Shown: positions 4,285 to 40,890 of the stretch, piece after piece
How positions within the stretch are numbered: the stretch's first letter is position 1
Layout of the letters: each line of letters opens with the position of its first letter
NCBI GenBank assembly: GCA_965112155.1
Contig: OZ218100.1
Reading direction: 5' to 3' (one strand)
From: Podarcis liolepis
Taxonomy: Eukaryota
DNA length: 64,000 bases
The notes under the pieces: generated by a model
The model's input: the letters and a program-made list of their open reading frames with translations, nothing else
Told to the model about the DNA's origin: nothing
Databases searched by the model: none
Program-made: the position numbers and the translations under genes

Positions 4285-5563
4285 GTAGGCAGAGACTACA
4301 GTAAACCCACCACTTGCACACATTTAACTTGTGCGCATTCAGCTTTACGGCCCTGGCCAAAAAGCAAAAAAGAGGAGTGGAAAGGAGGCGGGCATCCATG
4401 AAAAAAGACTTTGGCAATCACACCCACCATTGCACCTGATGTGTTTTGACTATACACAATTTTGGCTTTCGGTGTGATCCCTGGAACATAACCCCTGTGT
4501 AAATTACCCTATTATGAAGCAACAGCTCTTGTTGAGATTAAGCAGATGTGGCTCAGTGAGTTGCATGGATGAGGATTTTGAGAGAAAGGGAGATATAAAA
4601 GGAAGAATCCGAATTAAAGAACTGCCCCTCCTTGGTGAATTTCGCCTGTGAATGCTTTGTTGTCTTTGGGGAAGAGGCAAAAGCTATTTAATTCTTTTCC
4701 ACCCTTAATTTGTGAAGACATTTTACTGCTGCTAGCTTACCACCTTCACCCTCCTGTTTTTATACTTGCATTGCTTTACTGCTGGTGCATTTTTTAAATT
4801 GACTTTTTTTCTGAGTAAGCACATTCATACATTTGGGTTGCAGATCTTGCTCCCCCCCCCTCCAGAATATTGTAAGGATCTGAAGTTAGACAGAATACAC
4901 TGTATGTTCTCTTTCTTAGCAAATCTTTTGCCTCCTGCTTCTTATTAGTGTAACCTGGGTATTTCTCGGGGTTATATTTTTGGCAGAGTTCACCATTCTC
5001 TCAATTTTAACAATGATCCATATGAAAGCTTCTTGATAGGCTTTAGCATTTCGGAAAAAGAGCCATGTCTAACAGAGGTCAACGCAGGCCACATTTTAGG
5101 CATATGTGGGCAGCTGCAGGAAAAGATTAGAGACAGGAGTCTTGGGTAACTGCTAGGGAGAAAGGGATATGGTAGAGTAGAGAGAGCTGCTGTGTCAATA
5201 TTTGATTGAGCTGTTGGCAAGTGCTGGAATTTCCCACTTGCAGGTGACAGATGCTGCTGTGGAGGAAGAAGGACCTGGCAGGAAGGCAGCCTCTGTTTCA
5301 TCCTGCTCGTCCTGTCCTGACTGGTAGCTCCAGTGGCAGAGAATCAAAAAGCAGCAGCTGAAATAAGAACGTCCTTGGCAGAAGGTAGGGATCAGGCAGA
5401 AATTTGATTCAGTTCACGTTTGAAGGCAAACCTACCTGAATCACACTATCCAAAGCAATACATGAAGCACAGCCATCCTTCAAAATCTGCATTTCTCAGA
5501 CTTTTGATGTATTACAGTATTTTAATATTTTTTTGGAAGCCGCCCAGAGTGGCTGGGGTATAA

Positions 5564-5564
<1 letters not shown>

Positions 5565-5620
<56 letters not shown>
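5565..5620. repeat. (TTA)n microsatellite, tail of an L2-type 3' end
   Basis: Perfect TTA run preceded by GGAAGCCGCCCAGAGTGGCTGGGG, the same L2-type 3' motif seen inverted at ~24097-24140, 40845-40890 and 55460-55510. Confidence 0.85.
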
Positions 5621-18745: not shown

Positions 18746-19544
18746 TTGCATGTGAAGGTCCCCAAGCCACCCCTAAAAATAATTCACAAATCACACATAA
18801 TTTTTGTTTAAGGTTTTTGGCATAATTTTGGCCACAACTTTATTAAAATACATAATCTGTGAGTGATTGGTTATGACTATCTGTCCCCCCGCCTGGGACA
18901 GAACTGACTTTCTGAACTCCTTCGGAAGCCAGTGAAGGGAAAACAATGTTGGGGATCAGTTGAGCTGAGCAACAGTCCCTCACCGCTCACCCAACCAGCT
19001 CCCCAAGGCTTGCTGGCCCTGGTCCCATTTCAGGGATTGGACGAAATCGTGGCAAGCCCCAGGATTCCTTTAACGGAATTCCCTTCCACACCACCATTGG
19101 AGGGGCAGGCGCAGCCTATCCTGACCCCTCCTCCACCAATTTTTATAATCAATGCCTAACCGCAACCTTACAAGTTCTGACGAATTGCCAAGTAATAGGC
19201 AAAAACCAAATGGCACCAGCCAATCAGCCAAATGGACAAAATTCCTACTAGCCCCCTGCCCCAATGGCAGACGACCCCATGACAGGCATGGCAAGATTAA
19301 CCGGAACACAGGGCGGGCGGGCGGGTGATCCGATGCACGCTGCGAAAGAGAAAGCAAAAGCAGAGTGCCCCCAATATTTAAAGCCTTTGGTCCCACCCAC
19401 CCAATTTGCAACATTCAATTTGCCCCAGCAACCCGGTCATCCAATCGTTGCTTCAGGCAATCTCCATTTAACCTGCCTGGCAACAGAGGGTTGGCCTTGC
19501 AGACCCCACCGCAACACATGCTCTCATTTCAGGGAGAACACGCT
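18746..19544 (-). mobile_element. Solo A-C-B terminal unit of a Ngaro-family YR retrotransposon (diverged subfamily)
   Basis: Reverse complement starts AGCGTGTTCTCC, contains the conserved C spacer and AATAAAGTTGTGGCCAAA, and ends ...CATGCAA. Collinear with 39606-40419; no ORFs. Confidence 0.9.
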
Positions 19545-20556: not shown

Positions 20557-20706
20557 NNNNNNNNNNNNNNNNNNNNNNNNNNNNNNNNNNNNNNNNNNNN
20601 NNNNNNNNNNNNNNNNNNNNNNNNNNNNNNNNNNNNNNNNNNNNNNNNNNNNNNNNNNNNNNNNNNNNNNNNNNNNNNNNNNNNNNNNNNNNNNNNNNNN
20701 NNNNNN
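20557..20706. other. Assembly gap (150 N)
   Basis: Run of n characters. Confidence 1.
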
Positions 20707-21257: not shown

Positions 21258-22225
21258 GTGGATGGAGGAGACACAAGGTGTATTTCTCTTTGAGATTCAA
21301 TATTACACCAGAATCCACACCTCAACCAATGGGACGGGGGCATTGACATTGGGTCATAATCTATTGCATATTCCAAGCCATATTATTTTAGGCTACCAAT
21401 ATTATATTTTCTCATTAGTGTTCATCATATTTTCTAGTGTTTTGTGGGAAATTAATAGAGGGCAAACCTACTTTTAGTTATATAGATACTTTATAGTTCT
21501 ATATGTCTAGAGAGAGGATTAACTATAAAGATAATTAATGGCTTTCTAATCGCTTGAAGCTAAATAATGTCAGTTATTCCAATTTAGGTCAAATGGTGGG
21601 AAACTATAATGAATATCTGAATGCCAGGCCTGTTTCTCATGTCAGTCAAGAACAAACACTGATTCTTCATGTCCAAAGAAACCAAGATTACAATTCAGGT
21701 TGATAAAAATCATTTGATTAAAAAATAGAAGATATAATCTCTATTCAAACTGAATACAAATACAAAAATCCTCATACAACCTTACAGATTGTAGATTGTG
21801 ATAATTTATTTTCCCCACAGTGTGATCTGAAGCTTAGCAATTTTTTGCTGTAGAACACCTTAATAAGAATTCCTCTCTTAAATATTGGTCTCTTAAATTC
21901 AGCTATGAGAAACGCCTCACTCATTGCTGGCATCGGTCTGTCTTTGGAGACAATGGAGAGTTGCAGTGCTTGCTGTGGCTGTAGTGACCAATAGGAGAGA
22001 GGCATGTTTTATTGCAGATGGGGCGAATGAAGACATCCGGTTTCTCTGTTACTGATTCACCAGGGCATTTATGTGCTCCTCCAGTGGACAATTCTTCTCT
22101 AGTCTCTGCTGTGGATAAACAACCTGACTGTCTGTCTCCAGGCACCATGGTCATCTGCAAGGGGTTCCCACATAGCCGGGTTAATGTTTGCAGCCTTGCC
22201 ATCATGCTTGCAGACATTTTGATAA

Positions 22226-23025
22226 AGCGTGTTCTCCTTCATGAAGAGCACGTGTTGCGGTGGGGACTGACAAGACACCCCACTGTTGCTGGGTGGGAAA
22301 ATAATGTTGGTCACTTTACAATTGGGTTCTACCTGTTGCTGGGGAGATTTAAATATTGCCATTTTGTGATTGACAGCCATAGCCTTTATATGCCCTGCAT
22401 GCAGCGTTGAGCTTCCTCTTTTCACTGCGCGCATCACCCTCCCTCCCTCCGTTGATTCAGGGTTGTTCGCTTGACCTTGGTATGCCTGTCATGGGGCCAT
22501 CTGCTTTTGGGGCAGGGGCCCGGTAGGAATTTTGTCCATTTGGCTGGTTGGATGGTGCCATTTGGTTTTTGCCTACTGCGTAGCAAATTGTCACAACTTG
22601 TAAGGTTTCAGTTAGGCATTGGTTTTATGAAATGGTTGGTGGAGGGGTATGGATTGGCCGTGCCTGCCCCTCCAAATGCTGCTACTGCAAGGGTATTCCA
22701 TTAAAGGAATCCAGGGGCTCCCCATGCTTTTGTCCAAACCCCTGTTAAGGGGCTAGGGCCACGCAAGAGCCCCTGGGAGCAGTTGAGTGCATGGCACCCA
22801 GCTCCGTCTCTCTCCCCAAAACGTTTTCTCTTTCTGACTTTGCGGCCGGTTGAATGTCAGTCTGTCCCCGTGCGGGGTCAGATAGTCACAACCAATACCT
22901 AAGCAACCACTCACATTTCTTGTATTTCAATAAAGTTGTGGCCAAAGTTATGCCAAAAACCTTAAACAAAAATTACGTGTCAATTGTGTTTTATTGGTGG
23001 GTGTCTTGGGCACCTCGACACGCAA
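22226..23025 (+). mobile_element. Solo A-C-B terminal unit of a Ngaro-family YR retrotransposon (diverged subfamily)
   Basis: Starts AGCGTGTTCTCCTTC, carries the conserved C spacer and AATAAAGTTGTGGCCAAA, ends GACACGCAA. Collinear with 39606-40419. Confidence 0.9.
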
Positions 23026-24034
23026 CACAGACTTGGTGCCTGAAACCAGCTCCACATCCATGGAGATCCTGCCATCTTCCATTCTGTGTACACTCATAAC
23101 TGAATAAAGTAATTTTTACCCTGCCTTTATATTTGCAGACTCTACAAGGCAACTCACAATGAAATTATGAAAAATAAACAAACAGTTCATATGTATGAAG
23201 AGTCATGCACTGAGAACCCAGCTGTGTAGAACTCACTCCCAGCTGAGATCAGACAGGCCCCCTCCCTACTGAACTCCAGGCACTAGACAAGGACCTCTCT
23301 ATTTCAGTGGGCACTTTCAGTAAGCTGTATTATGACTATTTTTTGAACTTCTGTTTCTACCTGCGGTTTTTTTATTGTAAAAAAATGCATTATGTATTGT
23401 TTCTTCATTGTTGTATGGATTGCTTTAGCACTGTCTATGGTGAAAAACAGTCTAGAAATGGTGGAAATAAAGTAAAACAAATAAAAACACATGCTGAACA
23501 GGAAAAAAAATAAACTGTCTACAGAAACAATGCAAAGAACTGAACTCATTAGCAGGTTTTGAGTAGACATTTACAAGTAACAAAATGTATATAAATTGTA
23601 AGATCAAATATAAAAAAAAATGATTGAGAAGGTGTTATGCAGGAAGTGATATTATGTTAAAATAAACCAGAGAGGTAGGTTGAGGGAAGTCCAGGGGGAT
23701 GGGAGGGAAGGGATAATTTGGGATTGATGAATTATGATGATGATATTTGTTACAATGAAATTTTGGAAAAAATGGAAAAATTAATAAAAATTAGAACAGC
23801 AGCACAGAACCCCAGTGCCAAAAAGAGAGAGAAGTTGGCAGAAGAGCTACAGTAAAAGCTAAGTTAAAAGCACAGGAAAATCACAGGAAAATAACATTAA
23901 CAGATACAGGTAATTAACATCCCTGTGTAAATAGTTACTCAAAGTCAAGGAACCATAACTAATAAAGTCTGTTCCCCATTAGCCACCCATTTAACTCTCA
24001 GGGCCTCAGCTGCACACCTTAAATGATGGGCAAG

Positions 24035-26360: not shown

Positions 26361-28953
26361 CACATCAATTCAAGCAAATGTCAACAAGGATGTTTAGTGA
26401 GTTGGCTGCATGCAGTGGTTAGAGGATGAATTTGGATAGATGTGATTGCATTCCCTAACCAGCTGTTATGCCTGCTAGATGGTCTTAAGTAAGTCGCTGT
26501 TTCAGACTAATCATCTTCCAGGCCTAATAAGGTCAGAATTAGGCCAAGGCTTTGGGTAGGCATACTTACATCCTGATCTGGCATGTGAGTTCTCCATTTT
26601 CCTGGTAAGGAACCAAAAGCTTTAAGTGCAGAAGAAGCTGCTGTTCTGTTGACTAGGCCAGATGGAAAACCCTTGCTATTACAGTGTAGTAAACTGAGCC
26701 AGGACAGTATACTGCCTACCAATTGCAAGGGCTGCTGCATCACCCTATTCCTTTATTTTGCTAAAAAGGACCCTGAGGCAACTAGGTTGTAGGCTAGTTG
26801 CTAGCATCATACTATGAGATTCCCAGTTCAAGTCCCAGATTACCTCTCAGAATAAAATGATTTACGGATGCACCAAAATTCTATAGTTTAAGGTAGAAAA
26901 TACTTTTACTTTAACTAGAATCATGAGCATTTTTTTTATCTTGCAAAAGTGAATCTATTTTCAAAGAAGAAAAAAAGAAAAACGGAAAGCAATATATCAG
27001 CATTTACCAAACCTGACTCAACCCTGAAATTATTCAATATTTTATGTGGGCATTTTATTGTTCAACACAATAAACCTCCATTTCCTCGCTCCCTTCTCAG
27101 CCTAGTTTTTGTTGTGTTTGGGTCTTAAAATATTCATATTTAAATGGCCCCTTGAGGTTTCAAGACACTCACTGCAGCTGCAGTTGAAGGTATTCTCTCC
27201 CGCTTTTTTTGCACTCCAGTGGATTCAGAGAGTCGATTATTATTGTTGTATTCATAGCTCCCTAATTAAATCAGAGAGTGTCATTTCCTTCCAGCCATGA
27301 GTTTAGGGTGCACTGCCAACTCCTTAAAGCCATCTCCTTGATGCAAGTAGCTCTTGCACTGAATGTCTCAAGAATTATGCAGGCAGTTTAATTTTTTTTC
27401 CTTTTAAAGGTTATGATCCTTAAAGCTTCAGACAGACCCAGCTATACTTAACTCCTCTGCCTTGTCTTTATTTTCTTTCCTCAGTAAGTCCTGGTGCAAC
27501 CTCTGGTCTGTTTTTAAAACCCCTCTCTAATGAATGCATGTAGACTGATACCGTTAACAACTTAACATAGTGCTCTCGCTCTGCCAGCTGCCTGACAGTT
27601 CAGAAGCTCAATTGGTTCGAACACTTGGAGCAGAATAAATTTCCCACCGGCTTGGTGCAATTTTCAGAATGTTTTAGGCTCAGGCCTCTCTGTAGTGCCT
27701 GAGGGAATGCATTCAAGCTCACCGTGAAGAGGGCCCTATCCATATCTAAAGCTTAAAAGTTCTGAGGGGATTGTTTATCAGTGTTTGCAACACTGGTGAA
27801 AAGGTTCACTGCAACTCTAATTAAAAAAGCCTCAGGAGGCTTTGTGTTGTAAGAACAGTAAAACTCCTGGTGTGACATTTGTTAGGTATCTGGTTCGGGA
27901 TGCTATATTAGATGTGACTCAGTATTTAAGCAGGAGCTTTGGAAGCAGATACAAATGGCCTCTGCTAAAATACAAGGCACTGCTACAAATTCCACATTGT
28001 TTTCATTGTAATGTATGGGATTCTTTTAGCCATGCACACTATTTAACCATTCCTACCTATCTTTCACACTGGGTTGTATGCATTTCCCAGTAACACCGGG
28101 CATCTTTGCAGACACAGTTGATGGAAGGAGATGTGACATTGGTAGAAGGGGATAAAGTGTGAGCCAGCTCCAAATTAAACATGGCAGAGCCCTACAAGCA
28201 AACAATGCATGAACAAGGATGATGTCTCTCAGCCTAACCTACCTTAAAAGGCTCTTGAGGATAAAATGGGGTTGGTAGAATCATGTATGCCATTTTCAGC
28301 TCTTTGGAGACAAGGTGGGATGTAAATGAAAATACACAAATGAACAAACCCACCATGTCTCCTCTGTTGGTAGCACTAAAGCATAGCTGGTGAACTGTGA
28401 GGTGAGAACCTGGTGGTTGAGACATTAAGTGGGATTAAGGGGCTTGGTGCAAAATGGCATCCCTCCCTCAGCTCTCAGATAGTGAGCTAGATAGTGAGTT
28501 GAGAGGAAGCAGTGATGGGACCTAGAAGCAAAGCAGCAAGCAGAGAGCGAGAGAGAACCATGCCAGATCTCAATCCAAGACTGTGACTATGGAAGAAATC
28601 TTCTTGGGTGTTCATGCTGTGAACCCCTCCATTGTAGGCTCAGATTGTATATATGTGTAAATAAACCATATATCATAAAGATACCACAATCTCTGCTCTT
28701 CCTTATTCCAAAAGGAAAAAATGAACCTTAGGTGAGTGCCTAAAACCCATGGAATCTATCACTTCTCAGAGATTGGGGTGGCATGCAACAATATGTTACG
28801 GTCTAAGCTTTTGACACTTAAAAGGCTTAAAAACAAAAAATCCTTCTAAGAACGTAAGGTGAGTATGTTGGAACAGGTTAATCGTCCATCTGTTTCAGTA
28901 TCCTGTTTTCACAGTGGCCAACCAGATGGCCATGGGAAACCAGATGGGTGGGA

Positions 28954-28989
<36 letters not shown>
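28954..28989. repeat. (TTA)n microsatellite
   Basis: Direct reading. Confidence 0.95.
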
Positions 28990-28990
<1 letters not shown>

Positions 28991-30800: not shown

Positions 30801-33134
30801 GTTTTAAAATAAATATTGGTCTCCATGTATTCCCCCGCCATCAATTGAAATCACTTGCCAAATGTGTTGTGCATATTCCAATCTTGACGTCTTTTAATCA
30901 CTTGCAATCTGTAATCCTCCTCATGTGGGAAGTGCAGGATAGAAATCAAATTCAATCAAAACAAACACAAACAAGTATAAACTTTTAGGCTTTTTGCCGG
31001 TAGTTTATGAACATTCCTGATAGCAGATAATTGTTAGCGATGGGGGAACACGCTTGTCTCAGGGGCATAGCCCACAATTCTCGACCTTTCAGTACCAGTT
31101 AGTGCTGGAAAATGAAGATAATGATTCCTAGTCAATTGGTGTGTCACACAACCCTGCCACCTTTCCTATCCTGCTGTACCAGTTTACAGCAAAAGCATAA
31201 CTATGCCTAACTCAGAAGGAAGTCCTGTTGAACTCAATAGTGCCTACACACGAGTAAGTGGGGATTGGAGTGTGATGCACTGGAAAATCCCAAACAAACC
31301 TAGGGTCCTGGATGCCGTGTGGTCCAGCAGCCACAACTGCCAAAACTGGCTAGAATAATCCCTCCCAGCCATTGAGAACAATTCATCCAAGACTAGATTT
31401 AAATCATGTTTCTTTCATTGACTCACTACTAGGTGGTCTTGCATGTAGGGCAAACTGGTTATAAACAAGCCGATGAGTAAGAAAAGAAGCCTCCATTTAT
31501 TACATTTCAAACTCTTTCCTAAGGCTTGAGGCAGGAAATGGATTTTTTTCATCTGGTTGAAAGGGACCTGGAAAAGCCGCAATGCCTGAGGTATGCTCAT
31601 CCAGCTATGCTTTCTCACGGACAAGCGTTCGATTGTACAGTTTTGTAGCTTTTCGAGAATTTCAAAACCTCTTAACCTGTTTGTTCAAGGATGATAATGG
31701 GGGGGGGGGGGAGTTCATTCAACAAGTGTGCAATTCAACAGATGAAATGGTGTGTAAGTCAACAGGTGTGCACTCTTTCCCCCAAACAGTTGTACATGTG
31801 TAGCGACAGTTTGTGTTCAACGTAACATACAGGCAAGCCTGTTAGAGAGAGAGAAAAAAAATAAATTGAACATATAACCAACCACATCTTGTGTCACCAT
31901 AACAGGGCAGTGGCATGTTCAGAGACCAAGTACATGCTTTCATGTATAGGGTCCAAAGTTCAATATCTGCCCAAAATGGGGGCAGGTGATGGGACATATC
32001 TTGTAGGGGAGGGTGTCAGGCCAATCAACATAGAGAAAATGGGGAACTTGAGAACTTCCAGATGTTGCTGGACTACAGCTCTCCCTCTCGCCAAGTATTG
32101 GCCATGCAGGCTGGGAATTATGGGAGTCCACCAACATCTGGAGAGCCATAAGCTTCCCACCACTGTTTTAAATGTTCTCAAGAACCATTGTCTGTTTTTA
32201 ATACCTTTTCTCAAGGACTGATTCATGGTTATGAGTAATACATTCAGAAATAGGTTAAGTACCATTTACGCACCAGTTTTATATCTATCATCTTCATTAA
32301 AATGTGCATTTCTTTGTAATGCTCCCTGGGACACAATATGCATTTCTTATGTGGTTCTCACTGCTCAGCAAGTTTCCCACTTCTATTCTATATAGACCAC
32401 ACTTATAAAATACCACAGATGTCTATTTCAAAAGGTTACCATTTCTCTCAGTGTATCCATTTTCAAATTAAATGTGACCAACCACTTAGAAATACAAGCA
32501 AGGAAACTTACTTGCATTAATTTAATTGAGAGTAAATAAACAAACAGAACACACGAGTTCAACACAATTCACTCATCACTGAACAGGATTAACAACTTCC
32601 TTCTTCAAGGAATAATGAAGGCAGCATTTTAAAGGGTATCCCCTGGGTATAGCTATAATTTTCAAAATTAGAATATTGGTAAACACTTCTTTTTAAGACC
32701 ATCAATTATTTTCTTGGCACAGCAACACTTCCAAGCATGTAAAGAACCACTGCATTGTGATGGTTCTATTTAAGCATTTCTTTAATTGGATCATTAAATG
32801 CTGTTGTTTTAATATCAATTTTCTTAATGCTACCGGGCAGGTTGGTATCAGACTTTGTGAAATAAGGTCACTTCCCCTCCACAGTCTGCACCTTCTGAAA
32901 AAGCAGGCAAATATGCTTTTCATTACTGAGTAATGGGGTTAAGGGGGAAAAAACAATATAAAATTGGAAAGTGGGATTTTGCCATCTCCTTCCACAAATA
33001 TGTAATGATTCAAGGTTAAGAATGCAATCCTATACTCACTTTCTTGGGAACAGACCCCACTAAACTCAATGAGGTTTAATTCAGAGTGGTGCTCAACTGG
33101 AGTTGTCTCCCTGGCAAGGCCTTCTTGGTGGCAG

Positions 33135-33349
33135 GGCGTGTTCTCCTTCAAAATGAGAGCACGTGTTGCGGTTGGGAGAATACAAGCCACCCTGCTGTTA
33201 CTAGGCAGTTTTGGATAAAGGCAGAATCCTTAAAGGGTTAATTGAGTTACTGGGGAGTTTAGCACGTTGCCAATTTCTGGAGGAGGGCAGAGGCTATAAA
33301 TACAGGTCGCTTACGTCAGGGCGTCCTCTTGGCCTCTGCATTGGATCAC
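33135..33349 (+). repeat. Split direct repeat A1 (215 bp)
   Basis: Matches 39606-39820 except one T/C difference (33342 vs 39813). Confidence 0.97.
33295..33318 (+). promoter_or_regulatory. TATA box (TATAAATA) and downstream CRE-like TTACGTCA in repeat A; duplicated in A2 at ~39766-39789
   Basis: Motif about 50 nt before the end of A; the solo copies have TTTAAATA at the equivalent position. Confidence 0.6.
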
Positions 33350-33549
33350 GGAGCAGATCGTGTCTGGAGCCGGTTGTATTTTAAGCGTATATTTTCGCTG
33401 CTTCTAATTACTGCTTGTTTTCTCTTAAGTCCCCTTCTGCCTTTGTTCCTTCCTCCTTTTGTCTTAATTCCCTCCCACACTCCCTCCCTTTATTTTCCCG
33501 TTTATTTGCCTACCTTTTCCTGAGTTAATTTTAATTGTGTTTAAACAGC

Positions 33550-34130
33550 GTTTTACCGGGAGTGGACTCCGCCCCCCCCCCAGCCCGGGGGAGGCTTTCC
33601 TCCCGGCCTCGGGGAAGCCCCCGCGCTCTTACCGGGCCGCGGCCCACTCTTCCATTCCCCCCCTCCAAGCTCCGTAGTTGCGGAGCGCCCCCGGGGAACC
33701 CTCCTCCTTCCCTCCCACCGCCGCGTGGCCGGCGCTTACCTGGATTCACTGCGTGGGTGGCCGGATTAGGCCCTATTCTCTCCTGGGGGCCGTTACCGCG
33801 TGCGGCGGTCTCCCGGCGTTCCAGGCCGGGCCCGCGCGGCTGCGCCACGGCGCCGAGGGAGCGCTTGCCGGCGGGGTTTCCACAGGCCTCATTTTGAGCG
33901 CTTGAACGGCCCGCCTGTCCCGCGCTAACGCGCAAGGGCTTGCCGGACCCGGGGTGTCGTCGCCGCTGCGGCCTGAGCCCGCTGCGGCCTGGTAACATTT
34001 TTGCTGCGTAATCCCGGTTAGCTCCGCCATTTTCTTTGTGTCTTGCCGGCGTGGTGCTCCCCCTGGTGGCGCTGAGGGGTACTGCGCCTCTGTTGGATTG
34101 ATTGAGGAGCTAGGCCGCACCTCCTTCCTA
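33550..34130. promoter_or_regulatory. CpG island in the Ngaro leader with YY1 (34024-34033) and CTCF (34056-34070) motifs
   Basis: Very high GC/CpG content; CCGCCATTTT; GCTCCCCCTGGTGGC (reverse complement GCCACCAGGGGGAGC). Confidence 0.55.
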
Positions 34131-34285
34131 CCCCCCCTGCTGGCCGTTTGGGTACTGCACCCTGTCTATTTGCTTTATTTAAGCTGGTCAAGCATAATTG
34201 TTGCCTGGTATTGTTTTTTCTTGCCTCTGGGCCGGCTCTGAGGCCTCACAGGTTGGCTCCAGCGCTTAGGAGAGTTTAGTTAGTG

Positions 34286-34286
<1 letters not shown>

Positions 34287-34319
<33 letters not shown>
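34287..34319. repeat. (GATA)n microsatellite inside the Ngaro leader
   Basis: Direct reading. Confidence 0.9.
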
Positions 34320-34525
34320 TAGTTATTTAGACATACCTTTGGGCTAACATTTGGCCAAGAGTTATTATTTATTTATAACTTCTGCATAGATTGCAATTGA
34401 AGAGGGCTACTGAGTAGTAGCTGGTGGTAGGCCCAACAGTGGGTAGTGGTTGGAGGTTGCTAGCGGTTTATCTGCTGTATTGCTGGGAATTTAACTGGTT
34501 TTGATTTTATTTCCTGCTAGCAGGT

Positions 34526-36052
34526 ATGGCTCCAAAGAAAGCTGCTGCTCGCTCCAGCTCTGCTATCACTTCAAAACGGCCTATTAGAGGTCCATCCCAG
34601 GCGCTTCGTTCACCCCCTTCCAGCCAACCAGTGGGGCGAGTGCAATCATTGGTGGAAGGCATGGCCGGTGACCCTGCAGCTTTATCTCGCTTCGCAGCGG
34701 ATTTGGACGCCTTCTTGCAGCATCGTTCCGCCCAACCGTCCACATCTGGAAGGCTGCCCTCCTCAACATTGGTGGCGTCTACGGTTTCATCATCATCTAG
34801 CGAGGATGAGGGGGAGGGATCGTCGCCACAGGGTTTAATTTTGAATCCACAGTTATCCCAGTCCCCTGATGTACCTGCAATTCGGAACCAGCCTCGGAGG
34901 TCGGGCCGCCTCTCCGGGCGGGCCTCCAGAAAAAGTGCCCCTTTGGCCGCATCCACTCGCCGGCGTACGCCCGCCCGGTCTCCCACGGATGGGGCATCCG
35001 CTTCTGGTATCTCACGTGTTCTCTCTATGCAGTCTGTTTCAGTTCCGCCTCAACCGAATCCCGATTCGGAGTCCTCTAACGAAGACAGTCTACCGGTCCC
35101 TGCCAGGAGGTCGCTGGGAGGGAAGCGTCGCCACAAGAGGTCATCCCGAAAGCGTGCAAAGCGGAGGAAGGATGACTCTTCTTCCTCTCTTTCGGGTACG
35201 TCTTCCTCTAGTTCTGACGATGAGGGTAGTCATATGGAACTTTATTGGGGTTTTGGCGAATCGGTTTCAGGGCTTCCTCGGTGGGCTTGGGAGCGCAGGT
35301 CCAACACGCATCGGGCGAAATATGGAGCTGTTCAGGAATGCAGGGATGGCGTGTTGGTTCCTGACGTTAAAGTCTCAACTAACTCGGCCAGGGACATCAT
35401 TCCGGGCTCACATTTGTCATCGAAATTGCGTTCCCGGATATTAAATGGACGTTACGTGGACATGTTCAAACTGGCCCCACCTTCTGAGGAACAAGAGAAG
35501 GGGAGTGTTTCAACCAAAAAACGCTCAGGGGTCTCTGCGGCAGGCAGGACTTTTGAACATTGGCTTGACTCCTTTCAGGTCTTTGCTGGTATAGTTATGG
35601 CAGCCTATCCGCGTAGGTCCCTTCATTTGTTGGTTTATTTATCCATCGTGCGCTCTGCCTTTACCAAGGCTGGGGAAAAAGCTGCGATCAAATATGATGA
35701 GAATTTTAGGCGTCGTGCGGCTAAGATTCCCTCCGCACGCTGGGATCGGAAAGATCTAGATGTGTGGACTACTTACGTGGCTCCGCTTATTGACAAAAAG
35801 GTGCCGGAGCAACAGAAATTGGGTATCTCTCCTTTTAGGCCTGGCCGTCGGTTGCCTTGTTGGGATTTTAACAGGGCTTCTTGTCAGCGTTCAACATGTA
35901 GATTTGCGCACACTTGTGAGAAATGCAATGGATTGCATCCGGCTTCCTCTTGTTTTGGTGGGCGGCGGCCCTTTCGTGGAGGAAAAGGGGGCTCTCAACA
36001 ACCCCCCAAGTCAGTCCCCCCCACACCCTCAACCTCAGGTACAGCAAAATAA
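34526..36052 (+). CDS. gag: Ngaro ORF1, Gag-like protein (508 aa)
   Basis: Ser/Arg-rich N-terminus with a basic NLS-like patch, YDENFRRR core, C-terminal CX7CX4CX3H and CX2CX3HX4C zinc fingers; first AUG after the promoter. Confidence 0.88.
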   Translation: MAPKKAAARSSSAITSKRPIRGPSQALRSPPSSQPVGRVQSLVEGMAGDPAALSRFAADLDAFLQHRSAQPSTSGRLPSSTLVASTVSSSSSEDEGEGSSPQGLILNPQLSQSPDVPAIRNQPRRSGRLSGRASRKSAPLAASTRRRTPARSPTDGASASGISRVLSMQSVSVPPQPNPDSESSNEDSLPVPARRSLGGKRRHKRSSRKRAKRRKDDSSSSLSGTSSSSSDDEGSHMELYWGFGESVSGLPRWAWERRSNTHRAKYGAVQECRDGVLVPDVKVSTNSARDIIPGSHLSSKLRSRILNGRYVDMFKLAPPSEEQEKGSVSTKKRSGVSAAGRTFEHWLDSFQVFAGIVMAAYPRRSLHLLVYLSIVRSAFTKAGEKAAIKYDENFRRRAAKIPSARWDRKDLDVWTTYVAPLIDKKVPEQQKLGISPFRPGRRLPCWDFNRASCQRSTCRFAHTCEKCNGLHPASSCFGGRRPFRGGKGGSQQPPKSVPPTPSTSGTAK

Positions 36053-37658
36053 GGTGCTGACTTCCTTGGCCCAGACTCCCATACGTCTGCCGGCCCTTAA
36101 AAAGTGGCTCAGGTTTTACCCAGATAGGGAGGCCGCTCGTTACCTGAGCGATGGTTTTTCTGTTGGTTTTCGGATTCCAGTAGCCATGCCCCCCGTGGCT
36201 CGGAATTCGGCTAATCAGAAATCAGTTCGTGAATTGCCCGAAATTGCCCGAAAAAAGATCACAAAGGAGGTGGCTATGCATCGGATGGCTGGCCCCTTTT
36301 GTGCCCCTCCATTTCCAAAATTGCATGTTTCCCCATTGGGCATCGTGCCAAAGAAAGCCCCTGGTGAATTCCGTTTGATTCATAATTTATCACACCCTAG
36401 GGGTACTTCAGTTAACGATGTGATTCCTCCAGAGCTTTGCTCAGTTAAGTATGCCTCTCTTGATCACGCGATCAAGATGATTCGAAAATTTGGACCAGCT
36501 GCTTTATTGGCAAAATGCGACATAGAGTCGGCATTCCGTTTGCTGCCGATTCATCCTGAGGATTTTTGGCTGCTCGGTTTCCAGTTTGAGGGAAAATACT
36601 ATTTTGACAAAGCCATGCCCATGGGTTGTTCAATAGCGTGCGCAGCTTTTGAATCTTTCAGCACCTTTTTGGAATGGGCCCTCAAGTTGAAAACCGGGTT
36701 GGATGGGGTTACTCATTATTTGGATGATTTTTTATTGGCTTCTGATTGTAATACTGACAATTGCTCGGTTCTGTTGCGTGCTTTAGCTGCCCTTACTGAG
36801 GAAATAGGGGTCCCGTTAGCGGCGGAAAAGACTGAGGGTCCCTCGACTCAGCTTACGTATTTGGGTATCCTTTTGGATACGGTGTCTCAAACTTCCAGCT
36901 TGCCTAAGGATAAGCTGGTGGCTTTAAAAAAGGTTATAGAGGAATTGCTTCCCTTAAAGAAGGTGTCCCTACTGCAAATCCAATCGCTGTTAGGTCACCT
37001 GAATTTTGCCTGTAGGGTGGTGGCCCCGGGTCGCCCCTTTTGCTCTCGTTTGGCTCGCCTCACGGTGGGCTTGAAGGCCCCGCATCATCGTGTCCGTCTT
37101 TCTAGGGAGGTGAGGGCTGATCTCAGCATATGGCTTGAATTTTTGGAGGAATTCAATGGGGTATCGCTATGGCAAGACACTTTGAACTTGCAGAACGATT
37201 TTCAGGTGCATTCAGACGCAGCAGGGTCCCAAGGTTTTGGCCTATATTGGATGGGCAGGTGGTGTGCCAAGCGCTGGCCTCTTGATTGGCAGGGAACAGC
37301 CATTACGCGGGACCTAACTTTTCTTGAGTTCTTTCCCATTGCAGTGGCAGTGCACTTGTGGGTCGAAGAGTTCAGGGACCGACGCGTCTGCTTCTGGACT
37401 GATAACCAGGCGGTGGTGAATGTGCTGGCCAAGCTGTCGTCCCGCTCTCCTAGGGTGTCGGCCCTTTTGCGGGCTTTTGTTTTACATTGTTTACGTTATA
37501 ACATAGTGTTTTCTGCTCGTTTTGTTCCGGGGGTGTCTAACGAAATTGCCGATGCTCTGTCCCGTTTTCAGATGGAGCGGTTCAGACTTCTGGTTCCAGA
37601 GGCTCGGAAACGTCCGGAATGTTTCCCGGATCATCTCTGGAGCCTTGGCAGGAGCTAG
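35760..37658 (+). CDS. pol: Ngaro ORF2, reverse transcriptase/RNase H (true start uncertain)
   Basis: RT motifs PKK..G.FRLIHNLS, KCDIESAF, MPMG, YLDDF; RNase H motifs SDAAGS.G.G, LEFFP, TDNQ, NEIADALSR. Confidence 0.95.
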   Translation: MCGLLTWLRLLTKRCRSNRNWVSLLLGLAVGCLVGILTGLLVSVQHVDLRTLVRNAMDCIRLPLVLVGGGPFVEEKGALNNPPSQSPPHPQPQVQQNKVLTSLAQTPIRLPALKKWLRFYPDREAARYLSDGFSVGFRIPVAMPPVARNSANQKSVRELPEIARKKITKEVAMHRMAGPFCAPPFPKLHVSPLGIVPKKAPGEFRLIHNLSHPRGTSVNDVIPPELCSVKYASLDHAIKMIRKFGPAALLAKCDIESAFRLLPIHPEDFWLLGFQFEGKYYFDKAMPMGCSIACAAFESFSTFLEWALKLKTGLDGVTHYLDDFLLASDCNTDNCSVLLRALAALTEEIGVPLAAEKTEGPSTQLTYLGILLDTVSQTSSLPKDKLVALKKVIEELLPLKKVSLLQIQSLLGHLNFACRVVAPGRPFCSRLARLTVGLKAPHHRVRLSREVRADLSIWLEFLEEFNGVSLWQDTLNLQNDFQVHSDAAGSQGFGLYWMGRWCAKRWPLDWQGTAITRDLTFLEFFPIAVAVHLWVEEFRDRRVCFWTDNQAVVNVLAKLSSRSPRVSALLRAFVLHCLRYNIVFSARFVPGVSNEIADALSRFQMERFRLLVPEARKRPECFPDHLWSLGRS

Positions 37659-38542
37659 TTTTTCAGGGAGTAATGGCTTCTATTTCCCCTTCTACTCTCA
37701 GGTCATACACCAAAGCATGGACTGATTTTTTGTCCTTTACATATCAGCCAGCCGGGGAGCAAAGGTGGACTTCCCCCTCCACTTCTCAGGTGCTAAAATA
37801 TTTGGCGCACCTGTTTCAGTTGGGACGTGCAGCTAAGACGCTAAGAATTCAGGCAGCTGCTATTGCCTTTTTCTGCAAAGCTTATTTCGACAAAGATCCT
37901 TGCGCTAAGTTTGCCGTGCGTAAGGCCCTGGAGGGATGGGGTAGGCTTTGTCCTTCCCAGCCAGCTACTAGGCACCCTATCTCATATGATTTGCTGTGCA
38001 AGATGCGCAAAGAGTTGAGGAAGGTTTGCTGGTCCAGGTATGAGGCTCGCCTTTTTTCTGCGGCCTTTTCTATTGCTTTCTTCGGAGCACTAAGGGTGGG
38101 TGAGCTCGTATGGGAGGAGCACAAAAATGGCCGTTCTAGGGGATTATTGCTTCAGGATGCGCAGCTATCTCCGGATGAGCTGAGACTCCTCATTAGGAAC
38201 TCAAAAACGGATCAGGGTGGAAGGGGAGCCCTCATTCGTCTCCCGGCTACAAGGGAGGTGGGACCGTGTCCGGTCAAAGATGTCAGGAAGTACTTGTCCA
38301 TCCGGGCCCCGGGGGAAGGTCCACTGTTGCAGCATGAAGATGGGTCGCCTCTGTCTAGGCGACAGTTTGCAAGGGTGATGCGGAAGGCCATTGCGGCTTG
38401 TGGTGATTCTGCTAGTGGTTTTGCCCCACACTCTTTCAGGATTGGGGCTGCCACGACGGCAGCGCATTGGGGCCTGTCTGCAGGCAGAATAAAGAATTTG
38501 GGTCGCTGGAAGTCGAACGCGTTTCGAGGCTATGTTCGCTAA
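37619..38542 (+). CDS. Ngaro ORF3, tyrosine recombinase
   Basis: Complete catalytic set: R (ALRVGEL), K (SKTDQ), HxxR (HSFRIG), W (GRW), Y (FRGYVR). Confidence 0.95.
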   Translation: MFPGSSLEPWQELVFQGVMASISPSTLRSYTKAWTDFLSFTYQPAGEQRWTSPSTSQVLKYLAHLFQLGRAAKTLRIQAAAIAFFCKAYFDKDPCAKFAVRKALEGWGRLCPSQPATRHPISYDLLCKMRKELRKVCWSRYEARLFSAAFSIAFFGALRVGELVWEEHKNGRSRGLLLQDAQLSPDELRLLIRNSKTDQGGRGALIRLPATREVGPCPVKDVRKYLSIRAPGEGPLLQHEDGSPLSRRQFARVMRKAIAACGDSASGFAPHSFRIGAATTAAHWGLSAGRIKNLGRWKSNAFRGYVR

Positions 38543-38576
38543 CATGATGTTTTTTGTATTTTGTTGTCTATACCAG

Positions 38577-39151
38577 GTTTAGCAGCCGTACGCATATGGA
38601 TGGTGGGGCACAGTATCGTACATTGGGCCGGCGTTGGAGCCAGGCAGCTCAGATTGGGACCAGGTCTTGGCCTTCCTCCTCACGTGCACGTATCTTGGCT
38701 GGCCAGAAGGGGAATGTCCTGGACAGAGTTTCTGCCACTGATTCGTAGGCAGCTGGCTGAGAAAGGGTCGCCCACGGCCATCGTGGTGCAGCTGGGTGAG
38801 AATGACCTGGTTTCTATGGACTGTGCTTCGTTACGTGCAGCTATCCTGGGTGATCTTGAAGTGCTGCGAGCAATGGTGCCGGCAGCAAAAATTTTCTGGT
38901 CAAAGCTTTTGCAAAGGCGCAGTTGGAGAGGCAGTCGTTGCCCAACTGCCACCGAAAGGGCTAGGAAGCGGATCAATTCGGCGGTCTCAAAAAAGGTTTT
39001 TGAGTTGGGAGGTGACGTGATTTCCCATCCTGAGATTCTGGCCAGGGATGAATCACTTTTCAGAGATGATGGGGTGCATCTTTCAGCTTTAGGGAACAAG
39101 GCGTGGCTGGGTGCTGTGGTGGCTAAGCTAAGGTCTTGGCTGGGTTTGTGA
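38577..39151 (+). CDS. Ngaro ORF4, SGNH/GDSL hydrolase (esterase), probably entered through a splice acceptor at 38576/38577
   Basis: Block I WMVGHSI, block II RRG, block III QLGEND, block V DGVH; open to TGA at 39149-39151; no AUG upstream of the block I strand. Confidence 0.85.
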
Positions 39152-39179
39152 GTGGTTTGGCGGCGAGCGTAGGGCTCCA

Positions 39180-39605
39180 TTGGCGGTTAGGCATTGGTTA
39201 AAATTGGTTGGTCGAGGGGTAAGTGCCTACCCCTCCAATGGTGGTGTGAAAAAGGGAATTCCGTTAAAGGAATCCAGGGGCTTGCCATTCATTCGTCCTT
39301 GTCCCCGGAGTCGGACCTGGGCCGTGCAAGCCCCACAGGAACATGAGGGTGAGAGGTGTGGGACTGTTACCCAGCTTCACCTTCTCACCCAATACTTGTT
39401 TCCCAGGCTGGCTTCCGCTGGAATCCGGAAGGCCAGCCCTGTCCATGGGCGAGGACAGATAGTCATAACCAATGCCTAAGCAACCACTCACGTATTTGTA
39501 TTTTAATAAAGTTGTGGCCAAAATCATGCCAAAAACCTTAAACAAAATTAACGTGTGAAGTGTGAATTATTTGGTGAGGGTGGCTTTGTGGGACTCAACA
39601 CGCAA
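39180..39605 (+). repeat. Split direct repeat B1 (426 bp)
   Basis: Identical by eye to 39994-40419 (offset 814). Confidence 0.97.
39505..39510 (+). terminator. Polyadenylation signal AATAAA in B1; second copy at 40319-40324 in B2
   Basis: AATAAAGTTGTGGCCAAA is conserved in all four B copies and followed by a GT-rich tract. Confidence 0.6.
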
Positions 39606-39820
39606 GGCGTGTTCTCCTTCAAAATGAGAGCACGTGTTGCGGTTGGGAGAATACAAGCCACCCTGCTGTTACTAGGCAGTTTTGGATAAAGGCAGAATCC
39701 TTAAAGGGTTAATTGAGTTACTGGGGAGTTTAGCACGTTGCCAATTTCTGGAGGAGGGCAGAGGCTATAAATACAGGTCGCTTACGTCAGGGCGTCCTCT
39801 TGGCCTCTGCATCGGATCAC
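39606..39820 (+). repeat. Split direct repeat A2
   Basis: Copy of 33135-33349. Confidence 0.97.
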
Positions 39821-39993
39821 CCGCCCACCCTCCCTTTTATAAGGGGGGGTTTCTGGTTATTTGACCTTGCTATGCCTGTCATGGGGTCGTCCGCCTTGGT
39901 GCGGGGGCCTGGTAGGAATTTACCATTTGGCTGATTGGCTGGTGCCATTTGGGTTTCGCCTACTGCGTAGCAAATAAGTCACAACTTGTAAGG

Positions 39994-40419
39994 TTGGCGG
40001 TTAGGCATTGGTTAAAATTGGTTGGTCGAGGGGTAAGTGCCTACCCCTCCAATGGTGGTGTGAAAAAGGGAATTCCGTTAAAGGAATCCAGGGGCTTGCC
40101 ATTCATTCGTCCTTGTCCCCGGAGTCGGACCTGGGCCGTGCAAGCCCCACAGGAACATGAGGGTGAGAGGTGTGGGACTGTTACCCAGCTTCACCTTCTC
40201 ACCCAATACTTGTTTCCCAGGCTGGCTTCCGCTGGAATCCGGAAGGCCAGCCCTGTCCATGGGCGAGGACAGATAGTCATAACCAATGCCTAAGCAACCA
40301 CTCACGTATTTGTATTTTAATAAAGTTGTGGCCAAAATCATGCCAAAAACCTTAAACAAAATTAACGTGTGAAGTGTGAATTATTTGGTGAGGGTGGCTT
40401 TGTGGGACTCAACACGCAA
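39994..40419 (+). repeat. Split direct repeat B2
   Basis: Copy of 39180-39605. Confidence 0.97.
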
Positions 40420-40720
40420 CTACCCATTTGTGAAACACCCTCCCTGGTGCAATGCATCTGTTTCCCTCATTATTAACTTTTAGGACACATAAACACATTT
40501 CTGTTCACGTAAGCATTTGACGTATGAAAGGGATGCTTCTTGGCAACTTTGCAATTATTAGCTATGAAGGTATTTTGACAGTTTCATATGTTTTTAGATA
40601 GTCTTAGCGTTTTTAAGATGATTTTAAATTTTAAATTTTCAATTCTGCTGTTTTACCCTTTTGCTGTTTGCCACCCTTGGCTCCTTTGAGAGGAAGGGTG
40701 GAATAGAAATTTTAATTATA
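40420..40720 (+). mobile_element. Old L2-type 3' fragment interrupted by the Ngaro insertion; left part at ~33100-33134
   Basis: Joining the flanks gives GGCCTTCTTGGTGGCAG|CTACCCATTTGTGAAACACCCTCCC, resembling the L2-type motif at ~29940. Confidence 0.6.
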
Positions 40721-40797: not shown

Positions 40798-40846
<49 letters not shown>

Positions 40847-40890
40847 CCCACCCATCTGGCTGAGTTTCCCCAGCTACTCTGGGCGGCTAT
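40798..40890 (-). repeat. (AAT)n microsatellite plus inverted L2-type 3' tip
   Basis: AAT run followed by ACCCCACCCATCTGGCTG...CTCTGGGCGGCT. Confidence 0.8.

Follow-up and report, generated by a model that had tools for sequence, protein, structure and literature searches.

The question raised by this locus is what a retrotransposon does with an extensively folded segment in one of its split repeats. A 64,000-nt window of Podarcis liolepis DNA, by which we mean the whole stretch analyzed here, contains an intact, very young Ngaro-type retrotransposon of 7.3 kb, whose repeat B is predicted to fold into a 293-nt multihairpin domain. For the DIRS order, the primer of reverse transcription has yet to be established, with a 3′ hairpin proposed in the case of DIRS-1 (PMC7192593); split-repeat elements are thought to replicate via annealing between repeat portions (PMC6681497). 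A sequence-only reading of the locus had described the domain as supported by compensatory changes and as favoring the plus strand, and had suggested that it may serve in priming, packaging, export, or the control of read-through. We examined the fold, its fate in diverged copies and related species, and the functions it might have. Our preferred reading, to which we give about an even chance, is that the domain is a selectively maintained cis-acting nucleic acid structure, a platform in the sense RNA for the RT or Gag that possibly aids strand transfer from B2 to B1.

An Intact Ngaro-Type Element and Two Solo Units

A BLAST search of the window against itself gave the element the layout A1-ORFs-B1-A2-C-B2 (Table 1), with split direct repeats as in Ngaro: A1 lies at the 5′ end, and B1, A2, and B2 lie at the 3′ end. 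The ORF set comprises a Gag-like protein, an RT, a tyrosine recombinase, and a putative SGNH/GDSL hydrolase. No Pfam match was obtained for the Gag-like ORF. The RT ORF (35760-37658) matched RVT_1 with 49.1 bits (cut-off 29.6), and the recombinase ORF (37619-38542) gave Phage_integrase and SAM-like matches, both slightly under the Pfam cut-offs. The latter also had 635 homologues at E <= 1e-10, many of them labeled integrase/recombinase xerD homolog and originating from lizards and amphibians; the nearest named homologues, at 53-63% identity, came from the lacertids Podarcis, Lacerta, and Zootoca. The SGNH ORF, which follows the recombinase, covered 176 of the 178 profile positions of Lipase_GDSL_2 (E 2.2e-6; 28.7 bits, below the cut-off of 32.9).

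Ngaro-like elements with split repeats A1-B1A2B2 and an SGNH hydrolase ORF have been described from fish and amphibians (PMC9210276). The lizard element has in common with them the RT, tyrosine recombinase, and putative SGNH/GDSL ORFs, the A1...B1-A2-B2 layout, and near-identical repeat pairs; it differs in having an extra 173-nt spacer, C, between A2 and B2. In other respects it is a typical Ngaro-like element (DIRS order).

Two solo A-C-B units, the 19-kb and 22-kb copies, share their termini with the full element. Searches of the window with an nhmmer profile of B and with tblastn using the four ORFs yielded no further B copies or fragments. A run of 150 N at 20557-20706 (assembly gap or masked sequence) lies between the two solo units. 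Just 3′ of the element is a tandem or low-complexity repeat (40798-40859) that has 91-100% identity with 5544-5620 and 28940-28990 and is unrelated to the Ngaro repeats. Repeat A2 carries a TATAAATA box at 39766-39773, ~50 nt before the end of A (the A1 equivalent is at ~33295-33302), so A2 could give rise to a short transcript that crosses C and B2 and reaches the second AATAAA (40319-40324).

Table 1. Repeats, solo units, and predicted structural features of the Ngaro-type element (window coordinates)
Feature	Position	Strand	Description
Repeat A1	33131-33349		99% identity with A2 (39602-39820); self-BLAST
Repeat B1	39180..39605	+	426 nt; self-BLAST; order: 7 nt, structured domain, poly(A) module, 5′ arm of B/A junction hairpin
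Repeat B2	39994..40419	+	3′ end of element; 100% identity with B1
Spacer C	between A2 and B2		173 nt, unique
Solo A-C-B unit, 19-kb copy	19546-18744	-	B part ~75% identity with B1
Solo A-C-B unit, 22-kb copy	22224-23026	+	B part ~71% identity with B1
Structured domain of B1	39187..39479	+	293 nt; 14-bp closing stem enclosing six hairpin modules, ~95 predicted pairs
Second domain copy, in B2	40001..40293	+	100% identity; offset 814 nt
Homologous domain, 19-kb solo	18858..19160	-	~75% identity with B1
Homologous domain, 22-kb solo	22612..22902	+	~71% identity with B1
Closing stem	39187-39200 / 39466-39479		14 nt, 100% complementary; arms 265 nt apart
Hairpin 1 (GAGGGGTA/TACCCCTC)	39214..39235	+	helix 39214-21 / 39228-35
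Hairpin 2 (GGAATTCC...GGAATCC)	39255..39275	+	helix 39255-62 / 39269-75
Hairpin 3	39277..39334	+	9-bp outer helix 39277-85 / 39326-34; two 4-bp helices nested
Hairpin 3, nested helices	39295-98 / 39319-22 and 39301-04 / 39313-16
Variable hairpin	39338..39402	+	near-perfect 24-pair stem in intact copy; includes 39347-56 / 39381-90
Hairpin 5	39406..39438	+	helix 39406-17 / 39426-38
Hairpin 6 (CTGTCC/GGACAG)	39439..39458	+	helix 39439-44 / 39453-58
Poly(A) module (putative)	39497..39575	+	TGTA, AATAAA (39505-39510), GT-rich stretch 39553-39575

Repeat B Contains an Exceptionally Stable Domain

The domain starts 36 nt 3′ of the last stop codon, 7 nt inside the left edge of repeat B (39180), and ends 26 nt upstream of AATAAA; it therefore accounts for most of the 3′ UTR that separates the stop of the putative SGNH hydrolase ORF from the TGTA, AATAAA, and GT-rich motifs, which we take to be a poly(A) signal. 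Every helix named in the sequence-only reading, including the perfect 14-bp closing stem, was found at the place assigned to it; the helix of hairpin 2 (39255-62 / 39269-75) is an addition to that list. The domain folds clearly better than dinucleotide shuffles. With RNA parameters, the plus strand reached -133.0 kcal/mol compared with -102.7 +/- 5.7 for the shuffles (z -5.31), and 0 of 200 shuffles were as good; the minus strand reached -132.8 kcal/mol (z -6.79), and its z with DNA parameters was -6.47. The centroid structure was about the same as the minimum-energy structure. When the element was scanned from end to end in sliding 300-nt windows, z fell below -3.4 only at B and at the B/A junction. 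Windows over B reached z -5, and coding and leader windows remained mostly within +/-1.5, with extremes of -3.0 and +3.4.

The B/A junction has a structure of its own, a near-perfect hairpin of ~35 pairs (39577-39664) that extends across the B1/A2 boundary (39602-39605). Its 5′ arm consists of the end of B and the first bases of A, its 3′ arm lies within A, and the window 39480-39680, which holds it, has z -5.0. Joining the end of B2 to the start of A1 in a circle would rebuild this palindrome, which fits the idea of a recombination site. At the base of the 293-nt domain, ATTGG/CCAAT motifs occur five times (39178-39210, 39235-39239, and 39469-39473), with both arms of the closing stem included; these could be CCAAT-box-like protein sites or simply pairing partners.

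Several other identities for the segment were considered and rejected. A stop-free frame of 99-110 codons (39150-39479, +1 relative to ORF4), present in the intact copy only, extends over the entire domain and overlaps the ORF4 stop codon; because this frame is broken in both solo copies and has no codon-position pattern (codon periodicity, p 0.28 and 0.29), it is probably due to chance, and we dismissed protein coding. The candidate tRNA primer-binding site TGGTGGTG (39239-39246) was, judged by eye, a poor candidate for pairing with a tRNA 3′ end, and the 22-kb copy has not conserved it. Rfam 15 returned no match at E <= 1 for either strand of 33000-40600, a result that speaks against a tRNA- or 7SL-derived SINE head in B or C and agrees with the earlier statement that no described structured RNA in Ngaro split repeats was known. 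The literature that we searched on Ngaro-like elements likewise contained no description of a folded B-repeat domain.

Most Hairpins Are Retained in Diverged Copies While Loops Change

We folded the homologous segments of every copy separately, which amounts to three distinct sequences (intact, 19-kb, and 22-kb). Five hairpins recur at homologous places in the solo copies, at 71-75% identity. Hairpins 1, 2, 3 (with its nested helices), and 6 are present again in both solo copies; hairpin 5 is retained in the 19-kb copy, and the 22-kb copy keeps its outer CTGAC/GTCAG helix alone (z -0.3). The retained hairpin segments have z values of their own of about -1.5 to -3.8. In both solo copies the apex of hairpin 1 is 9 nt longer, and in hairpin 2 all 7 of 7 pairs are invariant across the three copies, with changes confined to the bulge and the loop. 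Hairpin 6 has z -2.4 to -3.8 in the three copies; the 19-kb copy has a longer version of it, and the 22-kb copy has rebuilt it with an internal mismatch. The claim that the inner helices persist in the solo copies is thus borne out for most hairpins, but the variable hairpin and the closing stem decay. The former is degraded in both solo copies, with a 10-nt deletion in the 22-kb copy. For the latter, the reported partial deletion in the 19-kb copy is real (11 nt, together with one A-C mismatch), but the 22-kb copy has two mismatches rather than the single one reported. Both cases are decay, not covariation.

Differences from the intact copy are two to three times rarer at paired than at unpaired sites (p about 1e-5 to 2e-4). 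With sites classified by the pairs of the intact copy, the per-site difference in the 19-kb copy was 0.169 for paired and 0.414 for unpaired sites (Fisher p 1.4e-5), and in the 22-kb copy it was 0.239 and 0.485 (Fisher p 5.3e-5). This contrast survives removal of columns within 3 of a gap and removal of the variable hairpin. By a visual count in the alignment, about 8 of 12 indels lie in unpaired segments (p 0.026). Expressed as identity between the solo copies and the intact element, stems within B stand at ~76-83% and loops at ~51-59%; A is ~70% identical or unalignable. Neutral decay after insertion would be even, and so this uneven divergence indicates that much of the difference arose in active lineages under differing constraint. 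The slow evolution of the stems could also reflect sequence-specific protein binding instead of pairing.

The poly(A) module directly 3′ of the domain is the best conserved and, in the contigs of related species, the deepest-covered part of B. Together with C, it has 83-87% identity in the solo copies, a DNA-level conservation above that of the ORFs or A.

Best-Supported Differences in Four Related Species Are Unpaired or Form G-U

Contigs of four related species were mapped on 38561-39993, with at least 80% likeness needed for placement. Summed depth over B (39185-39568) and C (39857-39993) was 20-100 times that over ORF4 and A2; it peaked at the poly(A) module and dipped at the variable hairpin. 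Because placement requires 80% likeness, this depth reflects both copy number and conservation, and it identifies B and C as the parts of the family that are either best conserved or most abundant. It is no demonstration that B and C circulate alone, and both solo units in the window retain a diverged A. The deepest segments were C (39857-39993) and the 39473-39568 part of B, with depths up to ~1 million versus a few thousand to ~30 thousand over ORF4.

Seven majority differences within the domain were best supported across the four species. Five are at unpaired positions, and two convert G-C to G-U (39381 and 39438); taken alone, the unpaired share of these seven gives p about 0.06. With the majority letter G that the four species have at 39213, hairpin 1 would gain a G-C pair to 39236.

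Parts of the stretch were matched as DNA by 20 runs from nine organisms, the four species above among them, and a search of sequencing runs found no RNA run with the stretch. In collections without lizard DNA, a 22-nt invariant pattern was absent from GTDB genomes and IMG/VR, a recombinase-based locus search of IMG/VR returned nothing, and the 42 metagenome contigs matching an 18-nt conserved pattern were chance matches, none being related by nhmmer. A blastn search against phage records also returned nothing.

Compensatory Changes Fit the Fold and Are Few

The individual changes cited by the sequence-only reading exist. GGGGCTC/GAGCCCC is present in the 22-kb copy, where it requires an indel of 2 nt and leaves a helix of 7 bp in place of 9; CTGAC/GTCAG occurs in the 22-kb copy with the G-T intermediate in the 19-kb copy; and TCTGTCCC/GGGACAGA is found in the 19-kb copy. 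At the level of single pairs, the three copies have G-C, G-T, and A-T at 39411-39433; at 39407-39437, the intact copy has G-C and the 19-kb copy A-T; and, in hairpin 3, 39302-39315 changes from T-A to C-G in the 22-kb copy, and G-C becomes G-U twice in the 19-kb copy. A contig from another species has CCCC...GGGG at the inner part of hairpin 3, where the window has GTCC...GGAC.

The support that these changes lend was, however, overstated. An RNAalifold consensus of the three sequences had 74 pairs and a covariation term of +3.79, which is a net penalty; by pair count, 90.5% of cells in the consensus structure were paired. Five double-changed pairs were counted compared with 1.6 +/- 1.0 in column shuffles (1/500) and 0-3 in slid-partner controls. 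The structure used had itself been derived from these sequences, and of the five pairs, three sit where the variable hairpin aligns poorly. We also redistributed the substitutions of each solo copy among sites with the same reference base. Under this permutation, broken pairs were fewer than expected (19 vs. 27.6, p 0.006; 22 vs. 32.3, p 0.003); the broken-pair counts are somewhat inflated because MAFFT misaligns two helices of the 22-kb copy. Neither changed-but-kept pairs (8 vs. 13.5 and 9 vs. 13.4 expected) nor double changes (2 observed vs. 2.3 and 3.7 expected) were in excess. With only three distinct sequences, covariation has no statistical power. The stems are conserved and the loops are free, and a few compensatory changes agree with the fold, but these do not amount to proof of covariation.

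These results bear on whether the structure is selected at all. The domain might instead be a patchwork of inherited palindromes, left by old inverted duplications or by a foldback/MITE-like insertion bounded by the 14-bp inverted repeat, with stems that appear conserved for causes other than pairing. The lack of a significant excess of compensated pairs would agree with this, as would the decay of the closing stem and variable hairpin in the solo copies and the restriction of near-perfect stems to the very young copy. However, the stem-versus-loop rate difference is strong and robust, and hairpins are re-made in other letters (TCCC/GGGA, CCCCT/AGGGG, CCCC/GGGG, and GTCC/GGAC). The loop-only indels and loop-only majority differences fit a pairing constraint. 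Moreover, the 14-bp arms are not flanked by a target-site duplication, and every copy has the domain, even at 25-29% divergence; on these two grounds we rejected a recent MITE insertion, and we see no sign of a recent foldback insertion. We consider it unlikely that the structure is unselected.

RNA or Single-Stranded cDNA

G-T pairs on the sense strand had been taken to favor folding of the plus strand. We could not uphold this preference: in the intact copy both strands have equal fold energy, and at the pairs of the intact copy, the solo copies show 13 G-U-type versus 9 A-C-type outcomes, which is not significant. The summed hairpin energies of the solo copies favor the plus strand slightly. 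The only hint of a plus-strand preference comes from the other species, in which C to T changes at 39381 and 39438 turn G-C into G-U on the plus strand. As both strands fold equally well, RNA is indistinguishable from single-stranded cDNA by folding, and it is by inference that we assign the domain to RNA.

Integron attC sites recombine as folded single strands, and the B domain might likewise work as single-stranded DNA, in second-strand priming, in circle formation, or as a folded substrate of the tyrosine recombinase. The minus strand folds as well as or better than the plus strand (z -6.8 with RNA and -6.5 with DNA parameters), the G-U and A-C outcomes lack a clear plus-strand bias, and the B/A junction hairpin (39577-39664) shows that DNA-level palindromes are part of the design of the element. 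DIRS-1, moreover, amplifies via linear single-stranded cDNA (PMC7192593). In contrast, on the minus strand the G-C to G-U changes at 39381 and 39438 would produce A-C mismatches, the spacers of known recombinase core sites are short compared with the 265 nt here, and several unrelated palindromes are unlikely to be the binding sites of one protein. Taking both sides together, we judge a role as single-stranded DNA to be rather unlikely.

A Candidate Platform in the 3′ UTR

Under the preferred reading of a selected platform in the sense RNA, the place of the domain inside repeat B means that every transcript ending in B1 or B2 carries it, and read-through of B1 would yield a transcript with two copies. 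The element's own RT or Gag would recognize the domain, and first-strand cDNA synthesis would thereby be started or guided; the domain may additionally aid homologous strand transfer between both copies of B. We infer this function from the position of the domain, its predicted fold, and its retained stems.

The same position invites a different interpretation, in which the domain regulates 3′-end formation, by influencing the use of the B1 versus the B2 poly(A) site or read-through, or acts on the stability or export of unspliced RNA. Retroviral upstream elements, the CTE, and ENE-type 3′ elements are models for such a role. A complete and highly conserved poly(A) module directly follows the domain, and the repeat-annealing model of replication (PMC6681497) would call for a transcript running through B1 into B2. 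However, the domain alone cannot distinguish two sites whose repeats, B1 and B2, are identical, and there is no poly(A) signal inside any helix or occluded by one. We judge regulation of 3′ ends, RNA stability, or export to be quite unlikely.

A more specific proposal can be framed around the preferred reading and the single-stranded alternative: the domain would be the RT initiation platform of tyrosine-recombinase retrotransposons, through RT recruitment or as a self-primer, or its folded single-stranded cDNA would be the recombinase substrate, a eukaryotic counterpart of attC. We put this forward tentatively, as a possibility on the unlikely side.

Comparison with Known Systems

Hairpins of the retroviral R region, such as HIV-1 TAR and the poly(A) hairpins, assist minus-strand transfer. 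The B repeat resembles R in being a repeated segment with a putative poly(A) signal and stable hairpins that would occur twice in genomic RNA in a scheme that needs repeat annealing. It differs in that both B copies are close to the 3′ end, whereas the retroviral repeats occupy opposite ends of the RNA, and in that AATAAA lies outside the helices; there is no sequence relation.

In R2 and stringent-type LINEs, a structured 3′ UTR is recognized by the RT, and target-primed reverse transcription proceeds with an endonuclease. The likeness here consists of a predicted folded domain near the RNA 3′ terminus whose structure is conserved above its sequence, with no sequence shared. Ngaro, however, uses a tyrosine recombinase and repeat annealing. 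The LINE stem-loop is also mentioned in a published account (PMC5135761).

Within the tyrosine-recombinase retrotransposons, the hairpin proposed as the DIRS-1 primer offers a parallel (PMC7192593). That structure is a single short hairpin at the extreme 3′ terminus, whereas the lizard element has a 293-nt multihairpin domain upstream of its putative poly(A) site. The solo A-C-B units have the same make-up as SIRE, a VIPER derivative in Trypanosoma cruzi that consists of A2, a short unique piece, and B2 (PMC6681497), although superfamily and host differ. The far greater depth of related-lizard contigs on C and B than on the ORFs extends this parallel. The lizard solo units, like SIRE, may be either recombination remnants or mobile units.

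Implications

Sharp bounds, unusual stability, a place in a repeat that takes part in annealing, and an adjoining putative poly(A) signal make the B domain a concrete candidate for a cis element. The way in which DIRS-order elements, Ngaro included, begin reverse transcription and restore their repeats has yet to be established (PMC7192593), and if the domain is a platform or a recombinase substrate, a priming or integration step of the order would become directly testable. If it is merely inherited, it would serve as a caution that a few compensatory-looking changes among three repeat copies are not evidence of covariation. The B domain and C can be used as annotation markers for the family and for its SIRE-like solo units.
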